DNA of 64,000 bases from Paragordius varius (Eukaryota; Animalia; Nematomorpha): NCBI GenBank assembly GCA_964247055.1, contig OZ176054.1, positions 4,402,001-4,466,000 on the forward strand, given 5' to 3'. Numbering within the stretch: position 1 is the stretch's first letter; the number at the start of each line of letters is the position of its first letter. The notes beneath the pieces were generated by a model. It worked only from the letters and a program-made list of their open reading frames with translations, had not been told where the DNA came from and ran no database searches. The position numbers and the translations under genes were made by a program. This document shows positions 14,101 to 64,000 of the stretch, piece by piece.

Positions 14101-17100
14101 TAAAATTAAATGAAGACGATATTCAATCCCGATCATGCACAATAAAGACACATTTTTGCCTAAAATATATTTACATTATACCTCTTAGCCCTCAGCGATT
14201 GGGAATCGTCAAGTTGGTGTAACCCCATATATTTTAGGGTTTTAACGAAAACCCGGATTCGTCGAGGTAGTATATTTTATTTATTTGTATATTTATGGGG
14301 GTGTTTCGTTCTCGGGGCTTCAAAATACAACGCTTCCGTGTGATTTTGGCTATTTTCATCAGTTTGATTAAAGTAGGTTTGGAAACCTTTAAATTTTCTG
14401 GTACTTGTTCTAGAATGTCATCTATTGTGGTTTCGGGATTTACTTTTACAATATTTTGAACCAACTTTATTAGTTCAGAATTATCATATTTTCCTTTTCT
14501 TCCTGTCTTTTTAGGAACCTTTTCAATGCCCAATACCATATTTCGTCGAAATTTGTTGATAATATAGACCTATTTTAATCCTCAACAAATTCCTTCGAAG
14601 GCATTTCATTATATATGGGATTTGAAAATGTTCTGTAGGCTTTATTTTTCTTCTCAGCAGTCCAAAACTGAAATAAGTCACCAGTTTCTTCATTGACTAA
14701 TTGTTCGTTTCGCAAAATGTTCAACAACTGGATCTTGTTATAAAAAAGAACGATACCTTGACTCTCAGATCGTACAAATTGCTGAGATAAGTCACTAATT
14801 TCTTCATAGACTAATTGTTCGTTTCGCTCAAAATGTTCAACAATTGGATCTAATTATTAAAATACATGATAATCTTTTACTCCAAATAATATGCTGTCCA
14901 GTATTTTTATTCCGTTTATAAGGCAATCATCTATCACCATCCTTGTTATATGAAAAAAAATTTGTGTAAAACTATTCTTTCCAGTGATAGGGCCATGGTA
15001 ATGGTATGGACTACTGAGTAGAAAAATAATGCCTACAGAACATTTTCAAATCCCATATATAATGAAATGCCTTCGAAGGAATTTGTTGAGGATAAAAATA
15101 GGTCTATATCGGTCATCAACAAATTTCGACGAAACATGGTTTTGGGCATTGAAAATGTTTCTAAAAAGACAGGAAGAAAAGGTAAATATGATAATTCTGA
15201 ACTAATAAAGTTGGTTGAAAATATTGTAAAAATTAATCCCGAAACAACAATTGATGATATACTAGCACAAATACCCGAAAATTTAAAGGTTTCCAAGCCT
15301 ACTTTAATCAAACTAATTAAAATATCCAAAATCACACGGACACGTTGTATTTTGGAGCCCCGCAAACGAAATACCCCTATGAATATACAAAAACGGTATG
15401 AATACGCATATAAAATGCAATATATACCTTTAAATAAAATATATTACATCGACGAATCCGGGTTTTCGTTAAAACCCAAAGATATATGGGGTTATGTGGA
15501 CGATTCCCAATCGTTAAGGGTTTCCAAAGAGGTATATTATAAATATATTTTTGTGTCCTTATTGTTTTAGAGCTTATGATGGCGAGGCGTTTAAAACATT
15601 TTTGCAGGAGAGCCTGCCAATGTTACCACCTGATGCAGTTATTGTGTGCGACAATGCGCCAATTCATAAAGCTGCGGTGGTTGGGGATTTAAGGAACAGG
15701 CTTGTTTTCTTACCTCCTTATTCCCCTCAACTCAATCATATGGAAAATCTTTTTCATGAAATAAAATTTTATTATTATAAAACACCTAGGTGTAAAAATT
15801 ATTTAGAACAACACCTTCGAATAATTCGTTTATTTGGGGAACGCAAAAATAAGACATTAAAAAATATTTTAATTTTTGTCATGATATTTTATTAATTACT
15901 GCTTTGAAGCGAAAAATGAAAACAATTATAGATATAGTTTTTATTAATATTCTAATCTCATTCGGAGGTGTTTTAAATTATATTTATTATCATATTTTTA
16001 TACATAATTATTCATAAATTTTTTAGTAAATTTTTATATTTATATAATTTTTTTAATGGTTGCTTTGAGTCGAACTTCAAATATTTTAAAAAGGCTCTTA
16101 AATCAGTTATTTGCAGCTTGGTTAAGGTTCTATCATCATCCTTGTTATAAGAAAAAAATTATATGTAAAACTATTCTTTCCAGTGATAGGGGCATGGTAA
16201 TGGTATAGTACACATACTCAGTAAATGCCCTTTTTTTTCCTTTTTTCTTAATAGTAAAAAAATAATTATAAATTAATGGGCATGGTAATGCTTACTTGTG
16301 CACCATAGCCTTTTGTTTTATTCTTTATAAATATTCATTTTTTTACTCCTTATATTAATTTTTTACTACAAATATTCGTTTATTTAATCCACTGTATATG
16401 CTATTATGAGCAAAGTGTAACAATGTTTCTATGACCTCTCACAAGAGACACTCTCTTACACGACAGTTATTTGGGTGTTCATGAATATTAATGTAATACA
16501 CCGATAAATTATAAAAAAAATATAAGAAAATATATTACAAAATTGTACCCAGGAATTCAATACTACTTGTGATAACATTTATTCTTCATATGTTACTATT
16601 GTATGTTTAAGCAAGAATGAAAGCACTACGATAGCGGAATGAATTTTTGGACCTTTTTATAAGATTTCGAGTAAATAAGGTCGACTGTAAATAAGTCTTG
16701 ATTTGCGATATTTTCCGCCAGTCAATATATGGTTCAAACTTTTGTGTTTTGTTATATAACTCGTTTGAGAGGGCCATAACTAAGGTATATTTAAAACTGA
16801 TTTGAGCAATATTATTTGTGCTAAATTTATTATCTAATTTAATAAAGTTTTTTAAGAATTCTCACTTTTCACCATATAATATGTTAAAAACCCTAAATAT
16901 AGAAAACATGTTTTTATTCCTGCAATTTTATCAAAAAATAATTTTATCAACATTATATATCTTTTACAGATTATCGAATAAAGGATGCAATATAGTTATA
17001 TCTATTCATCAACCAAGATATGAAATTTTTAAAATGTTTGATTCCCTTATACTACTATGCAATGGGGAGGTGGTGTACCACGGATTCTCATCTTTTGCCC

Positions 17101-39109: not shown

Positions 39110-41030
39110 TAAGGTGACCAGACGTCCCGCTTTTGGCGGGACAGTCCCGCTTTTTCACACTTTGTCCCGCGTCCCGCTAGGTTTTTAATATGTCCCGCTT
39201 TTTCACGATTATATAAAAAAAATATTTTTAATACAAATAAATTTATCTGTTATCATTAAATATATTTAAAATCTATATAAATTTTAAATTAATAATTATT
39301 TTTTTCGAATTTATATCATATGATTATACACTTTCCTTCCTACTACTACTGTCATCATTATCAAATAGCGAAGTTAATACCACAAATCTTTAAAAGACAA
39401 ATTGATACCACAAATCGGTACCTTAAACGTTTATTCCAGAAAATTAAGGTAATATAATATTTATTATACTAATAGTAGTTTATAAATATGAGCACAAAAA
39501 GAGGTTGTAAATTCAACGATGAATTAATGAAAGATTTTCCTTTTATCAAAAAAACGAAGAATGAATCATCTGTTGAATGTATTATTTGCGAGGGGGAATT
39601 CACCCTAGCACATGGCGGCAAGTATGATATTACAAAGCTGGAAACACAGAAACTTAAAAAATGTTTAGATATGGCAACATCATCTTACAAAATGAGCGAT
39701 TTTTTTCGAAAAACCGTTTTTGGAGAGGAAGAAAAGAATTTGGCACTAGCTGAGGGCGTGTTATCTTTTCACGCTGTTAATCACAATCATTCCTTTTGAT
39801 CTATGGACTGTACCACAGAGTTTATTCGCACGTTATTCCATAAAAAATTTACATGTGCCCGTACAGGGGTGTAAACCATTGAATGCAATGTCCTTTCGCC
39901 ACATGCATTTTCTGAAATACAAAAAGATTTGCTGAAAATTAATTTCATATCGCTATACTTTGATGCATCAAATTACAAGGAAACAAAATTATTTCCCACT
40001 TTAATATGATATTTTGATTCAGAAACCGGAGTAAAAATTAAAATTTTAGATTTAATTTCTCTACCCGGTGAAAATTCCGAAATAATATTTACTTCAATAA
40101 TGCATATTCTAGAAAAAAATAATTTAAAAGACAAAATTATCGCATATTGCGCTGACAACACCAATACGAACTTCGGTGGAAAAGCAAGGAGGGGAACGAA
40201 TAATATTCATAAATTAACAGATAATCATTATCAAAACATTATTGGCGTTGGGTGTGAAGCGCATATAATACACAACGCTATTCAAACAGCTGCTGATTTG
40301 TTACCACTAGATGTGGAAAATGTAGTTGTTATAATATATTCCTATTTTTATATATACACGGTACGTGTTGAAACGCTTAAAGAATTCTGTGAAGATGCAG
40401 AACCTCAATATCAAAAAATGCTTGCATATTGTAAAACTCGTTGGTTAGCTTTTATCAGCTATCGAAAAAATTTAAAAAATTTATAATCCTTCAAAATCAT
40501 TTTTTTATCACAGGACAAATGTCCTACAACTTTAAAAAAGTTTTTTGAAAGTGATTCTTCAAAAATATGGTTAGAATTATAATCAAGCTTCTCTCTTTCA
40601 AAATGTTATAGAATTTATAGAAGGTGACAAAACTTCGGCAATCGAAGTAGCCAATGAAGTAAGTAACCTAAAATTCCAATGTCAAGAACGGTTAGAAAAT
40701 AATTTTATACCATTAACCATCCGCAATATAATAAATTTAGAAAAACAAGGCTTAATAAATCGCCAAGATATCCTGTACCATATAAAAATGTTTTATACAA
40801 ACTGTAAAGATTATTTGGAAGACTGGACATTTTCATTGGATAACATTAAAATCAGAATTTAATTGGTGCGATGTTCAAAAATCATTTGATTATATCTGTT
40901 CCTAAAAATTCTCAAAAAGTAATCTTTCAGAAAATGATCTTTTTTCTGAAGAATCATTAGTTAAAAGATATATTAATAATGAAAAACTTAAATTATGGAC
41001 AAAGAAAAATTATATAAATAAAGACTGTAC
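39110..41030 (+). mobile_element. hAT (Blackjack-like) transposon with decayed BED-finger transposase; right TIR missing
   Basis: Left end AAGGTGACCAGACGTCCCGC...GGGACAGTCCCGC with five GTCCCGC repeats. Fragments ECIICEGEF..AHGG, ISLYFDASN, YCADNTNTNFGG, GCEAHIIHN, KTRWL. Confidence 0.88.
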
Positions 41031-46587: not shown

Positions 46588-47687
46588 CCCTTTATGATTT
46601 GTATTACATCTTCATCATTAAGTATATGTTCTTTTCCAACTCTTTGTGGGTTGTGTTTAACCGAGCTACCCCAAACTTGGGCATATTTAAATTGAGCAAG
46701 TATAGTTTTGTGGATACTATTACAAAAATCTTCCACTGTGCGCGATTTTTGTTTTAAAATGACAGGACTGTTATAATCAGGTATTTGCCCTTTTGGTTTA
46801 GTATATATCCGTAAAAGCTTCATATATTCCCACATAGTTTCTAAAAGTTCATCAAAATTCCACTTTAGATGAGCAGATATTGGAACACAATGGGGGAGTT
46901 GTGATAGAATGTTTAATTCTTCCAAGGAAATGTCATCTATTTTGTTTAGCACATAAATACAGGGTATATAAACTCTATTACCCTCTATAACATCGATAAA
47001 TTCGTCAGTAGTTACATCAGTACGAAAGGTAATATCGGCATTGTGTATCTTATATTCACCCAATATATTTTTTACCTGGTCATAATCGAGTTCTGATTGC
47101 GGTACTAATGCATTGAAATTAATACCACCACCAATTTTATCTTTGCGTTTAAAGCTAATGGGAGGAGGACTTTTATTTAATCGTATGCCGAAACCATCCA
47201 GTTCTTTTTCCAACAATAATTTGTGTTTGAGCGGTTTTGTAACATCGAGTATCATTAAAATTAAATCACACGTTCTTGCTACAGCTATGACTTGTTTACC
47301 TCTGCCTTTTCCATCTTTCGCGCCTTCAATTATGCCAGGAAGATCAAGCAGTTGAATTCTGGCACCCTTATACTTTACGACACCTGGTACGGTAGTGAGT
47401 GTTGTAAACTCATAAGCTGCAACTTCGGAATAAACGCCAGCCAAGTTAGAGAGAAGCGTACTTTTACCAACCGATGGAAAACCCACAAAACCGACACGAG
47501 AATCTCCAGTTTTAGCGACATCAAATCCTTCGCCAGTGCCACCACCGCCTGATTTAGGCGTAATAAGTTCTCTTCGTAGTTTTGCTAATCTAGCTTTCAG
47601 AATTCCCAGATGACCCATTGTAGCTTTATTTCTTTGCGTACGAGCCATCTCATTTTCAATTTCACTAATTTTTTCCAACACGCCCAT
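46584..47687 (-). CDS. DRG1: Developmentally regulated GTP-binding protein 1 (intronless, 367 aa)
   Basis: [60 protein letters not shown]-terminal TGS domain. Confidence 0.98.
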
Positions 47688-47819
47688 GCTGATATTTGAT
47701 TGTATGAAAACGTATGTGCAATCACCGCATGAAATCTTTCTTTTTTCGGTTTATAAAGTAATGCAATACTTATAAATATATAAAATATAAAAATATGGTA
47801 TTGTAGCTGCTTTTATTAC

Positions 47820-56590: not shown

Positions 56591-57338
56591 TCAAGCTTCA
56601 ACTATTTCATAAAGAAGATGTAAAGCATTTCCTACCGCTAAATTTTTATTTTGTATGTCCCCAAGGGTATCGGAATTCTGTAATTTAATAAATTGTCCAT
56701 TTTTCTCCAAATATATATTATATTCACATTTGTCTGTGTTACTTAATAAATCTCTCATATTTAGATATTTTTTTAAATGTTCAACTATAAATTAATATAA
56801 TTAATACTGGATGCGTTCGAGGTAGTTTTCAAATATTTTGTTGAATCCTTAGACGATTGTTGATTATACGGCTTAAAAATAATTTCAATAGGTTTAACTA
56901 AATTATATATGAAATATAACTTTCTTCAAAAGCGGAACAATTTTTTATCGTATCCATACTTATTTTTTTCCATTTTTGGTGAATCCGTTGCTCATATTCT
57001 TCCCTATATGGATAAATTTTTTTAATTAGTGTATCAAAGGTAGGATCTGGTCGTAACGAACGTTTTGAAATTAATTTTTTACGGCATGTTGGGCATTCTT
57101 TGTTTCCGCTCCTCAATGCTGTGATTATACATTCATGACAAAAGCGATGTAAACATTCTTTCGTTGTCATAGTTTGTTTCAACATATCGAGACAAATAGG
57201 ACATATTAACTCATTATGCAAACTTTGCATAGATATGGCAATTTTGGTGTCATCCTCTATCAACTTCTGTGGTTCACGATTTAATTCGTATAAATTCAAC
57301 TCCCAAACCTTATTTGAAAATATTGTATCAGCAGACAT
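56591..57338 (-). CDS. RNF2: Polycomb PRC1 E3 ligase RING1/RNF2 (Sce), 233 aa
   Basis: Exons 57338-56921, 56897-56808, 56784-56591 (702 nt). [10 protein letters not shown]3HC4 [58 protein letters not shown] domain IEIIFKP...[17 protein letters not shown]. Confidence 0.95.
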
Positions 57339-57350
57339 GCAATAATTGTA
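57339..57350. promoter_or_regulatory. 12-bp spacer between the divergent RING1 and VPS16 start codons
   Basis: Sequence GCAATAATTGTA contains the dyad CAAT-A-ATTG; both starts are fixed by conserved N-termini. Confidence 0.6.
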
Positions 57351-59119
57351 ATGGATACAGCTGACTGGATCCCAAGTGGAACTAATAAATACTACAGGTA
57401 AAAGGGGTTATGTAGAAAATAGGAAATTCGAATTAGGATTAATGAAATGGAAGGACATTCCAAGTTTTTCTCATTATTACATTGCGTGCTCATTATATGG
57501 CGGTCCTCTTGCATTTCTTTTGAAAGACAATGGTGAAAAACAAAAGTGCATGATTATGATTTTATCCGCATTCGGTAGCAAATTGGGCATGATCAAGTTT
57601 TAACTTTATAAAATTTAGTATTTTAGATACTCGTATAGTTCTTATAAGTTGGACTATAGCTTATCCTGATAATTTATTGCTTCTTCAAGATGATGGGACT
57701 ATTTTAATTTATAACCAATTTGGAAATTTTATTAAAAATGATAAGCTAAGCATTCAAGAAAATTGGACCATATTGGATTCACACATATTTTTAAGAGAAG
57801 AAAAGGAGAAAAATACTGGCTTAGCCGTGCTTTCTAGGCTCTTACATCAAAACGTACCACAATATAAACTATTTTACATTGAAAATGTTATGAATAAAAA
57901 TTGTAAAATTGCGGAATTTAAAACAAATTTTGAGTCTTTTAAATGTGTCAATACACATTTTAATACCCAACACATTCAATCTTTTCAGGCATATCGCCCT
58001 TTATGGCATTTGATATATCAATATAATAGAATATATTTGATATCCATCAATTTGAAAAATAATAAATTTTTCATTACCGATAAAAATAATTATGAACTAA
58101 CACTCAACCTTGATTTAAAAGGTAATCAAATACAATTTTCCATTCACTCTAATAACCGACACATTGCCATATATGACAAATATTCCATCCATATTGTAAA
58201 TATTTTATGGGATGCTGATATTTCTAACCTAAATTGCCGCTTACTTTACAGTTTTTGTATTGAATCCGATCCTTTCATTAAAATAAGTTTTGTGTTATTT
58301 GTTCAATTTTTTTATTATAGAAAATGAATATGGAAACGTTTATTGGTGTGGGTCAGATACATTGCTATGCATAGGGAGTGTTAATTATGTTTTGTACTCT
58401 CTTGATGAAGGGTCCACGCAAGTCAATAAACTCTTTTTCACTCTAAACAACACTGAAGATGCAGGCAGCAAAGAAAATGACATCATTGTCATACCAGAAA
58501 TCGATGGTTGTAGATTAATTACAAAATGTACGACATTGTTTGTGCAAAAAGTTCCAACTCTCACAACCAATATATTTAAGATTAGTAGTACATCGTACAC
58601 TTCGTTCCTTTACAACAATTTTTGTGGCGAATCTTCCTCCAAATTTATGACACAAATGTTTAACTTGCACCGATTTCGCACCGAAGATCGAAAAAACTTA
58701 AAACACGCCATTATGGAATGTATTAATGGAGCGTTTGAAGAATACTGTGTATTAAGACAGAAAAAGCTCCTTACAGCAGCATCTTGTGGTCTTAAGTTAT
58801 TGGCATTTACGGAAAAAAGCACAAAAAACATGGTTGGATATTTTTATCGCGCCCTAGGAATTCTAAAATTATTGAATAATCTTAGGTGTTTTGCCGACAT
58901 ACCGCTAACTTACACACAATTTATCATGCTATGTTACTCTGATACAGAAACCAATATATATTCTCTAAAAGACATAGATTCTAGCATCAAAATTGTCATT
59001 AATAAATTAACCGATAAAAAATTTTATGCACTTGCTTTGGAGATTACCAAAAATCTACTGAATGATTCACGTTCCAAGGATCAAATTTTGTGTAAATGGG
59101 CTTGTTCTATGGTAATTTT

Positions 59120-59164
<45 letters not shown>

Positions 59165-61356
59165 CAATGAATTTTATTTTCAAAAATATTGTGTTAATTC
59201 GCTAATTTGAGGTTTACATCTAATTAAATTTACTGCGACATTAGATAGATAAATGGCTGTTTTTCAAGGAAATCTAGGACCTCCTGTCTTGACTGAATAT
59301 TTTTTCTGGGTATCAATGGATTGAAAAATTTTTTGATTAACCGATCCCCGTCTTTTATGTTTTTAGACTGTAGGTCTTGGGTGATGTTATTGTCTCATGT
59401 TATTGCTAAACGACCAACTCTGTTTTATTTGTTTGGATAATTTATTAAATTTTCATCCAATCATTATTTAATCTTTGTTTATGACCATAGTGGTCGAGTC
59501 TATGGGTCTGGATATATTGAAATCGATAGGGCATTTGTTTGGTTATACTTATGAGAAAATGCTCGTTTGAATGTGCTTATCTTCCTATTCAGCATATTCT
59601 CATATGTTTTATTCATTTGCCATGTCTCCTGCATATGCTGTTGTGGGGCTTAGCACCAATAGTGTATATAGCCCACTTACCTTGATGCAACCATTTCCGT
59701 TCAAGGAAGTTCTTTAGAAGCCATTAAAGATCGCAGGGAAGGTTAAACTAGTATAAACACATATTCGCAATAAATATAGTTATACGAAAAGAAAATATGC
59801 ACGATTAGTGTTAGGCCCACAATTACTTAACCATGTGAATCATGGCAAATGAAACCTAATGCGTATAAACTCATAAATTTTCACTTTTCTGGTTATACGA
59901 TTATCCTAATGCATATTATTATATATAATCGTATGTTTTTAGAGTTAAATATAACGATTTTAACTTTTTATCTTATGTTAATTTCATATTCCATTAATAT
60001 TACCAATTCATTTAGTGTTTAAGCCATTTTTATTTTTTGAAGTAGTTCTAAATCAACTATTTCAATACACAGGAAAATAGTTTCGGTTAAAATCACCGGC
60101 TTTTATGTTAGTTCGTAGATCTCGGGTAAAGTTATTGTACAAGTTTTGCTGGACGATTAACTCTAATTTTTTGTTCGGCATATGAATTATATTTTTTATC
60201 CGTTGAACAAAAAATTCTTCAATAAATCGATCAATAGAATAACCCCGTCACGACGTTTGGTCCAAGATTTCCTTGGCAACAGCCAGCTATCTACCTTTAT
60301 CAAAAATCTATTCTATTAAATTTGTACCTAAGTTAGTCGAAGTCAAAGCATTAATTAAATTTTATCTCTTTTGGTTAAACTTTGCCGCACAAAATTTAAA
60401 CTGAAATGATCCATATTGGTTTATAATTAATGTTAACGATCATTTACTCATATCAATCATATAGAATAAGCTGATCACAACTTATTTTTTACATAGTTTA
60501 TATATTTTATGCATAGGCCCGCTCATCTGTGAAAGATTTAAATTTAACAGAAAGCTCTTCTAAACTACCTGACCAAGTTAAAGCTTCCCAATCTCTTGAT
60601 CATAATATTGAACAACGTAAACTTGGAGAAATTTTAACTATTTGTGATAACGATCATCGCATGAAATTGTACATTCTTATTCAACTCCATAATTTTCGCG
60701 AAGCATTAAATTTGATTTTGCCTAATAAAGATAATAATATACCCATCCCATATAAATTGGTTGACGTTGAATGGACTTATTACATTTTGATTGACGCGCT
60801 CCAAGTTAATCAGGATAGAAAATTTTATAATTACATTGTAAATAACTCTTGCACTTACAACAATCTTAAAAATATTAATCGGTACATACCCATGAGTTTG
60901 TATGGTGGAAGCAATGATACCACTAAAACCTTGTCCAGAAAAGACATTTATATAAAATTTTTCAAAAATTTATCCAATACGGATTCTACCAAATACAACA
61001 AAGTTTTACATGATAAATTTATTTTTAGAGTAACTATGTCCCGAAAGATTCATTGTTTGAAGAAAGAAGACAACTTTCCAAACATTTGGAAAAATTGAAA
61101 TTGGGACCGAAAACTTCTGTGAATACCCTTTTAAAATATTGCATTAAAAATGAATTAAATGTAAATGAAATTAGGACTATGTATCAAATTCCTGCTAAGA
61201 GGTTTGCCTCTATTTTATTATAGATTTATGTATAATCAAATAAAAAGTCTAGCAGAACAGAAAAAATGGAAAGAAATCCAGACACTTCAAAAAACATTTA
61301 AGAATCCCAGTGAGATTGTCACACTTTTGCAAAATGTTTTGAAAAATGAAATGTGA
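57351..61356 (+). CDS. VPS16: Vacuolar protein sorting 16 (HOPS/CORVET subunit), divergent
   Basis: [13 protein letters not shown]|KFEL..M.W...YGGPLA after a 25-nt intron (57398-57422); [37 protein letters not shown]...IPLTY.QF, KWAC; Vps16_C IPAKRFMY.QIKSLAE..KW. The 3' end is approximate. Confidence 0.85.
59125..59165. repeat. (TA)n microsatellite in a VPS16 intron
   Basis: A pure TA run interrupted near its end. Confidence 0.9.
59270..59720 (-). mobile_element. Old LINE remnant in a VPS16 intron
   Basis: [22 protein letters not shown] resembles the LY..lv.P...Yg.E.W...kl..F region. Confidence 0.4.
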
Positions 61357-61439
61357 CTGATTTAAACTATTTTATTATTTATTAAAATCAATAATAAATT
61401 CTTTTCTATACAAAAGTGTTTTTGTTTTATCATTACATA

Positions 61440-62954: not shown

Positions 62955-64000
62955 AAAGAGGGTAAGTGAGAGGGAAAGCAATGGCAAACCACCCTCGTTT
63001 ATTACTGCCAAAAAATAGTTTTACTATATGAACTTAACGAGACTTTTTAAAGTTGGATGCTGGAATGTACGTTCCTTAACAGAAACCAAACAGGTGATAA
63101 TTGAAAAGGAAATGGAAAGATTGAACTTAGATATACTGGGTCTAACGGAAACTAAGCAAAAAGGTAGCGCGAAAGTACAAAACGAAAATTATACATTGTT
63201 AAGATCGGGGAGAGATGACCAGAAATCAGAAGGCGTTGCAGTATTAATAAAAAACAAATTAAATAAAAGTCTCATTAGTTATACACCATATACACCCAGA
63301 TCATGACTATTAGGCTGAATGCCAAGCCACTTAAATTTACATACATAGTAGTCTATGCTCCTACGTCAAACGCTCCCAAAGAAGACATAGAGGACTTTTA
63401 TGCAACGTTGCAAATAGTTTTGGATGAAACGAAGAAAGGAGATATGATTATCATAGGAGGGGATTGGAACACCAAAGTCGGTAGAGGTAGAGTAGATCAA
63501 ATAGTTGGCCCATATGGATTGGGAGAACGAAACGAGGCCGGTGAAGCACTGATCAATTTTTGTCAAGAAAATGAGATGATGATAACCAACACATGGTTTC
63601 CACAACACAATAGGAGGTTATATACATGGACCTCTCCATGTGGTAAATATAAGAACCAAATTGATTACATAATATGTCCTCAAAAATGGAAAAGCTCTAT
63701 AATCGATACCAAAACAAGCAAAAGCAGCGATTGCTCTAGCGATCATGAGCTTCTAATAACCAAAATCAAATTAAAATAATTAAAAATAAGGTTAAACAGA
63801 TATACAGATATGACACTCGGAACATTCCAAATAGTTTTAGAACAGAAACAAAAGATAGTTTAGAAAGATTGGACAATGAATGTAGCTCAGAACAATTATG
63901 GGGAACGATAAAAAATGTTGTTAATGAAGTGGCAAAAGAAAAAGTGCAGAGAGTAAAGAGGAAAGATAACAAATGGATATCAGAAAAGAGTTTAGAGATA
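62955..64000 (+). mobile_element. RTE (BovB-like) LINE 5' part: APE endonuclease, frameshifted; continues out of the window
   Basis: KVGCWNVRSL, DILGLTET, GVAVLI, IVVYAPT, IIGGDWNTKVG, GLGERNEAG, NTWF...RRLYTWTSP, NQIDYI, SDHELL. Frameshifts near 63300 and 63780. 5' motif GCAATGGCAAACCAC at 62978-62992. Confidence 0.93.

Follow-up and report, generated by a model that had tools for sequence, protein, structure and literature searches.

Direct reading of the sequence revealed two genes, RING1 on the minus strand and VPS16 on the plus strand, lying head to head with 12 bp between their start codons. From the placement of a recurrent TCAG word in the sequence we propose, at what we judge to be even chances, that each gene is transcribed from a TCAG initiator that precedes its ATG by about 22 nt, with the two start sites crossed. 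The pair lies in a 64-kb stretch of DNA (64,000 nucleotides), called here the window, to which the coordinates refer; it is animal-type DNA of 28% GC, and the assembly amounts to 110.6 Mb in 44 contigs. The GC content published for a hairworm genome is 26.9%. RING1 is the Polycomb gene for the PRC1 E3 ligase, and VPS16 is the vesicle-tethering gene for the HOPS/CORVET subunit. The two are intact, unrelated housekeeping genes that abut at the following elements.

57336-57338, minus strand: RING1 start codon, CAT on the plus strand, assigned from the sequence and the orthologue alignment
57339-57350, no strand: spacer of 12 bp between the two start codons
57351-57353, plus strand: VPS16 start codon ATG, assigned from the sequence and orthologue N-termini

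A preliminary description of this DNA had claimed the 12-bp head-to-head gap, and it is borne out, with orthologue support for both codons. The same two ATGs, at 57338 and 57351, were picked by a gene finder using coding statistics only. A divergent pair is defined by opposite strands and by 5' ends within 1 kb of each other; RING1 and VPS16, with ATGs 12 bp apart, fit this definition, and both are validated by homology. The searches on which this validation rests were made with single exons of RING1 and VPS16 rather than with joined, spliced proteins.

56591-57338, minus strand: RING1/RNF2-type gene of 3 exons and ~234 codons, from the Pfam RING finger, the N-terminal alignment and the exon model
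56921-57338, 56808-56897 and 56591-56784, minus strand: the RING1 exons of the gene-finder model, with two 23-nt introns

The RING1 open reading frame at 56898-57338 on the minus strand encodes a C3HC4 RING finger (Pfam, E=2e-15) together with the N-terminal W-E-L..Y-E-L segment. The product is 61-69% identical to the aligned RING1/RNF2 orthologues of many animals, with 65 invariant columns. Its Met1 occupies the same alignment column (alignment A1) as Met1 of several orthologues, and the invariant W-E-L follows 11 residues on. The next methionine is residue 37, which cannot be the start because 14 positions before it, between residues 10 and 34, are invariant; RING1 had been said to have no other methionine ahead of the WELxLYEL motif. 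Upstream of the start, the RING1 frame contains no ATG and is closed by a stop 23 codons up. Exon 2, searched singly, matches orthologue P0073 where its RAWUL domain begins, with 50% identity (E=6e-7), and the last exon searched alone gave no Pfam match. An exact look-up of the exon-1 product in protein collections returned no record, and a word search found only RING1 proteins of other animals, 60-81% identical, with neither a transcript of this gene nor a close relative among them.

57351-57397, plus strand: VPS16 exon 1, with 15 codons from the ATG on and then two bases of an Arg codon that is split
57398-57422, plus strand: VPS16 intron 1, 25 nt, GT..TAG, with the frame restored into exon 2
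57423-57596, 57619-58286 and 58321-59111, plus strand: VPS16 exons 2-4, the Vps16_N region, from Pfam, orthologue tblastn and the exon model
60517-61401, plus strand: probable C-terminal VPS16 exons, of uncertain limits, in a model that runs on into a downstream retroelement

Exon 1 of VPS16 reads M-D-T-A-D-W..Y-Y, and exon 2 goes on with R-K-F-E-L. Many full-length VPS16 orthologues start MSTADW, MQAADW or similar and continue ..Y-Y-R-K, and the comparison of exon 1 and the split Arg codon with these N-termini confirms an orthologue-like beginning, MDTADW..YYRK, as had been put forward for this gene. In tblastn, residue 17 (the R-K) of four orthologues is placed at 57421, where the codons of exon 2 begin. 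The frame has no ATG from its upstream stop down to 57351. Pfam Vps16_N positions 16-78 match exon 2 (E=6.5e-4) and positions 295-401 match exon 4 (E=2.4e-18). The protein is very diverged: a full scan of a representative library yielded 152 relatives, the best 34-37% identical, and a length-limited word search with a 306-residue piece was without any match. In the C-terminal region, orthologue residues ~721-766 are weakly matched at 61222-61401 (tblastn, E=0.002), and Pfam gave no Vps16_C match on the piece at 60529-61002. A PDB sequence search with exon 2 returned a single match, which was spurious.

The TCAG word emerged from a sample of 264 kb, made up of the 64-kb window and 200 kb adjoining it. 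Genes were called with a custom exon-chain finder that combines three-periodic Markov coding scores with GT..AG introns and makes no use of upstream sequence. It yielded 28 gene starts, several of them of transposon genes, a predicted coding fraction of ~26%, and 198 short predicted introns with a median length of 26 nt, whose acceptors are 72% TAG and 10% CAG. All 256 4-mers were scanned in 4-nt windows at 60 positions across the 80 nt upstream of the 28 starts, giving 15,360 tests. TCAG located 19-22 nt before the ATG ranks first, with 6 of the 28 starts against 0.24 expected (p=1.1e-7, or ~2e-3 once corrected for 15,360 tests); the next unrelated word reaches p=3.5e-4. This statistic is that of one 264-kb stretch and of our own gene models, in which transposon genes are included and some starts may be wrong. 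With the RING1-VPS16 pair left out, TCAG is still found at that distance in 4 of 26 genes (p=6e-5). Its presence in both members of the pair has a chance probability of ~1.3e-4, even at the higher frequency of the word antisense to coding sequence.

Across the whole genome, TCAG-N(19-22)-ATGGC occurs 1087 times and the same pattern at N(39-42) 981 times (z=2.3), a marginal excess over a control that is inflated by a repeat family. The raw genome-wide count of TCAG-N(19-22)-ATG is swamped by a satellite.

57328-57331, plus strand: TCAG, candidate VPS16 initiator, 19 nt before the ATG and antisense to RING1 codons 3-4; predicted +1 at A 57330
57361-57364, minus strand: TCAG, candidate RING1 initiator, 22 nt before the ATG and antisense to VPS16 codons 4-5; predicted +1 at A 57362
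57337-57345, plus strand: two-codon upstream reading frame ATG CAA TAA, 8 nt from the predicted VPS16 cap

With ATGs separated by a mere 12 bp, each candidate initiator falls within the first codons of the partner gene, and in both cases the opposite strand encodes Ala-Asp, written GCT-GAY. Rightward transcription of VPS16 would begin at the A of 57330 and leftward transcription of RING1 at the A of 57362. The leaders would then be 21 nt for VPS16 and 24 nt for RING1, the messages would overlap antisense by ~33 bp, and each core promoter, from about -40 to +1, would be written in the first ~16 codons of the partner. Leaders of ~22 nt would probably be near the shortest length at which the first AUG is read well. 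The RING1 start codon, read in the complement and followed by G, forces the ATG at 57337, which lies near the predicted cap and would mostly be skipped by established scanning rules. Among the other genes with TCAG, some predicted leaders hold upstream ATGs. A fixed distance between initiator and ATG is, to our knowledge, unusual for animals, and this counts against reading TCAG as an initiator.

On each side of a start site, tens of base pairs are taken up by the initiation complex, and we agree with the argument made earlier that the gap has no room for two preinitiation complexes. Two such complexes could not occupy the site together, and a given template would serve the two genes in alternation because both cannot load at once. 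From the position of the word we infer its role as initiator, the exact start sites and the alternate firing. Alternate firing has been discussed for human overlapping promoters (PMC10887517). Two promoter arrangements had been offered in the preliminary description: either each promoter lies in the first exon of the partner, or the spacer is one bidirectional initiator. The first is strengthened by the new positional motif, through the TCAG sites in the partner exons, whereas the second, which turned on a dyad in the spacer, falls away for the reasons set out below. One TATA-like word occurs ~30 nt upstream of the TCAGs, on the RING1 side, and was rejected as a candidate, being indistinguishable from background in DNA of 72% AT.

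The proposal of crossed initiators has to be weighed against other readings of where transcription begins. In one, which we regard as rather unlikely, transcription starts within the spacer or at its edges, giving leaders of 12 nt or less with no overlap of the messages, in a TISU-like or leaderless manner. Such starts would find a parallel in DRG1 (47687) and in the gene at 88168 of the larger coordinate system, where TCAG stands only 1-2 nt before the ATG, and the VPS16 leader would be spared its forced upstream ATG if transcription began rightward of 57337. The spacer, however, has neither TCAG nor any other recurrent word, its dyad being at chance level, and the positioned TCAG of both genes stands farther from the ATG, at 19 and 22 nt. 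The consensus around the ATG in TISU genes is GC-rich; here neither ATG is set in such a consensus, and position -3 is T in each.

Longer leaders were also considered, in which transcription starts at least 100 nt inside the partner, or from remote promoters, and TCAG is something other than the start site, for example a translational element of the leader. Upstream of the RING1 start there is no sense-strand ATG for 117 nt, and upstream of VPS16 none for 99 nt, apart from the forced one at 57337; the joint chance of ATG-free stretches of these lengths is ~0.02, which is weak taken alone. The motif, moreover, is fixed relative to the ATG and not relative to other promoter words, as would suit a role within the message. 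Against these points, a long VPS16 leader would hold the ATG at 57337, with its stop 5 nt before the real ATG, and the 4-mer scan found no other word enriched further upstream of the 28 starts. On this evidence we consider long crossed leaders improbable.

If, instead, long precursors were cut at an acceptor near the ATG and received a common leader by spliced-leader trans-splicing, the 12-bp gap would say nothing about promoters. Nematodes, the supposed sister group, do trans-splice spliced leaders; the last two bases of TCAG are AG, and in DRG1 a single base separates ..TATCAG from the ATG. The TCAG sites themselves are not acceptor-like. With a matrix built from the 198 predicted introns, the six positioned sites and two more rank among the lowest 1-9% of predicted cis-acceptors, with scores like those of random AGs, and they have neither the AT-rich tract nor the bias to TAG that marks acceptors in this genome. 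A genome search with the nematode SL1 22-mer gave 4 near-matches against 2 for the control, and its 12-nt core gave 27 against 41; the Rfam SL1 model (RF00198), in a search run without a positive control, had no match, and a literature search found nothing that links Nematomorpha with spliced leaders. These results speak against a leader of nematode type, though a novel one may exist, and we consider trans-splicing quite improbable as the source of the pattern.

The position-specific enrichment of TCAG, with its non-acceptor character, is thus an observed property of these gene starts, and crossed initiators remain our preferred account of it. The other element of the junction that might have served both genes is a palindrome in the spacer.

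57340-57348, no strand: dyad CAAT-A-ATTG, judged a chance palindrome

The dyad is present as had been claimed, centred in the gap, and it contains TAATTG, presumably a homeodomain-type core; both its central position in the 12 bp and this core count in favour of CAATAATTG being a dedicated bidirectional initiator or factor site. In the window, however, CAATWATTG occurs 3 times against 2.75 expected (4 times in the 264 kb), and 10.6% of genomic 12-mers carry a comparable dyad, defined by arms of 4 or more and a loop of 0-3. The RPL32-BUD31 and GCN2-PTPA junctions lack the dyad, as do the others read. The predicted enrichment between divergent ATGs did not materialise: CAT-N(0-10)-CAATWATTG-N(0-10)-ATG is found 104 times genome-wide against ~69 expected from word frequencies, a count that includes several copies of one repeat, and the reversed control gave 30 but is built of different words. 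The palindrome looks like chance, with no special role in the spacer. A dedicated two-way site at this junction is hardly credible, and as a general two-way element the dyad is close to refuted.

Mis-assignment of one start codon, through use of a downstream methionine or an unseen upstream coding exon that would make the true gap larger, is suggested by a VPS16 exon 1 of just 15 codons in so diverged a protein, but is highly improbable given the invariant residues ahead of RING1 residue 37, the conserved A-D-W..Y-Y-R of VPS16 exon 1 in a family with only 16 residues before R-K, and the lack of an upstream in-frame ATG in either gene.

Other closely spaced junctions occur in this genome. The spacer between RPL32 and BUD31, checked in the sequence, is 29 bp, and that between GCN2 and PTPA, in the window, is at most 39 bp, the value varying with the PTPA ATG chosen. 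GCN2-PTPA is without TCAG at 19-22 nt, and in the RPL32-BUD31 pair the word stands 9 nt from BUD31. The remaining divergent neighbours in the gene-finder models of the 264 kb are 1-8 kb apart. A histogram of pairs of open reading frames, both of at least 40-50 codons, showed no peak at short gaps, because such frames are mostly noise or exons from within genes. With ~26% predicted coding in the 264 kb and many transposons, the genome is not dense. The abutting starts coexist with ample spare DNA, and their closeness is not simply a lack of room.

57358-57363, no strand: CAGCTG palindrome, overlapping the RING1-side TCAG; the 8-mer TCAGCTGT is also present in the RPL32-BUD31 spacer

This palindrome, an E-box, was considered as a possible shared element; it is only about twofold over-represented in the 264 kb, mostly away from gene starts. 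Its genome-wide counts in the two orientations are 2381 and 2154, both contaminated by repeats.

Comparison with known systems brings out both likenesses and differences. In human, a divergent partner lies within 1 kb for 11% of genes, and in 23% of these cases the 5' ends overlap (PMC10887517). The 5'-overlapping head-to-head genes of human and mouse are likewise unrelated, housekeeping-type genes on opposite strands, although in RING1-VPS16 the crossing is predicted from the TCAG positions. The mammalian pairs overlap in untranslated CpG-island DNA, with most paired start sites more than 60 bp apart, whereas here the ATGs are 12 bp apart in DNA of 28% GC and the presumed core promoters lie in the coding sequence of the partner.

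The fly initiator is TCAGTY, with CA at the start site, and is found in ~18% of promoters (PMC1779564). The arthropod element (A=+1) shares with the word described here the core TCAG, strand specificity and precise placement, and the frequencies are alike (~18% against 6 of 28, or 21%). It differs in that the position here is counted from the ATG and not from a mapped start site, and in that the fifth base is not T-biased; at the six positioned sites TCAG is followed by G, T, C, C, A and T, with C in both RING1 and VPS16. By visual inspection there is no DPE-like word at +28. Starts with TISU elements or short leaders have a very short distance between cap and AUG, as predicted here, but 21-24 nt would be longer than is typical of TISU. 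In microsporidia and nucleomorphs, whose reduced genomes are gene-dense, transcripts run into neighbouring genes and regulatory sequence lies inside them. Regulation embedded in a neighbour would be the feature in common with RING1-VPS16; unlike theirs, this genome is not dense overall.

A wider generalisation can be put forward only tentatively, and we would not call it probable: the lineage may have settled on leaders of ~22 nt set by TCAG, with crossed promoters inside partner codons in many divergent pairs. If this were so, the same 30-40 bp would be the N-terminus of a protein on one strand and the promoter of the opposite gene on the other, and we know of no animal in which such systematic dual coding has been described. 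The first codons of many genes would be doubly constrained, by the protein and by the promoter of the partner. Such genes will be mis-called by gene finders that require untranslated sequence or a promoter between genes. The pairs would be natural either/or transcription units in an animal, and they would show how short the leader of an animal message can become. Crossed initiators would also explain why start codons abut despite the spare DNA, and the closeness of the genes would then not be a by-product of genome shrinkage.

Besides the RING1-VPS16 junction, with its 12 bp between start codons, two further places were read, a junction on contig C3 of the assembly (G000) and the start of DRG1 in the window:

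L031:1770-1804 (on a piece of C3), G000:C3 about 9937852-9937886: RPL32 and BUD31 start codons, 29 bp between them
47676-47710: DRG1 start codon, CAT at 47685-47687, - strand

The RPL32-BUD31 spacer contains TCAGCTGT, an 8-mer found in identical form on the RING1 side of the RING1-VPS16 junction, with a gap of 9 nt to the BUD31 ATG. On the other strand, the RPL32 side carries ACAG 20 nt before the RPL32 ATG. On the DRG1 strand, TATCAGC lies ahead of the DRG1 start codon, with a single base between TCAG and the ATG, and this start codon makes up a CATG together with an ATG of the + strand. A short + strand frame opening at ATG 47706 and followed by GT may be a first exon belonging to a divergent partner.

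VPS16 (57351-61401) is unusually diverged: its top relative among 1.84 billion representatives searched is 34-37% identical (E=7e-12), and a length-limited word search returned no hit. The long VPS16 open reading frame ends in a TA-rich microsatellite at 59120-59210, which appears as I-Y repeats in the translation and is placed by the gene model inside a predicted intron of 560 nt. The 198 short introns predicted in the 264 kb of C5:4202001-4466000 have a median length of 26 nt, nearly all falling between 19 and 44 nt, with the donor consensus CAG|GTAT and acceptors TAG (72%), AAG (16%) and CAG (10%).

Three stretches of the window look like transposon genes, their identities having been assigned by eye from open reading frame translations rather than from Pfam:

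14234-15895: two diverged copies of a mariner/Tc1-like transposase, arranged head to head
39488-40486: hAT-like transposase, with a near-copy at position 108053 of the 264 kb
63028-63779: endonuclease-reverse-transcriptase element, directly downstream of VPS16

Elsewhere in the assembly, a single-copy 22-mer at G000:C4:5338835-5338856 differs from the nematode SL1 spliced leader by two mismatches, a likeness at chance level. Two satellite-like arrays, at 0.56-0.90 Mb and 0.16-0.36 Mb of G000:C1, distort word counts across the genome. The same contig holds several near-perfect 33-bp palindromes running from CAT to ATG (at 2798882, 3296108, 3316224 and 3794944, among the matches listed), centred on an A-run, CAGCTG and a T-run; these could belong to a repeat family, or they could mark a class of start codons that abut.
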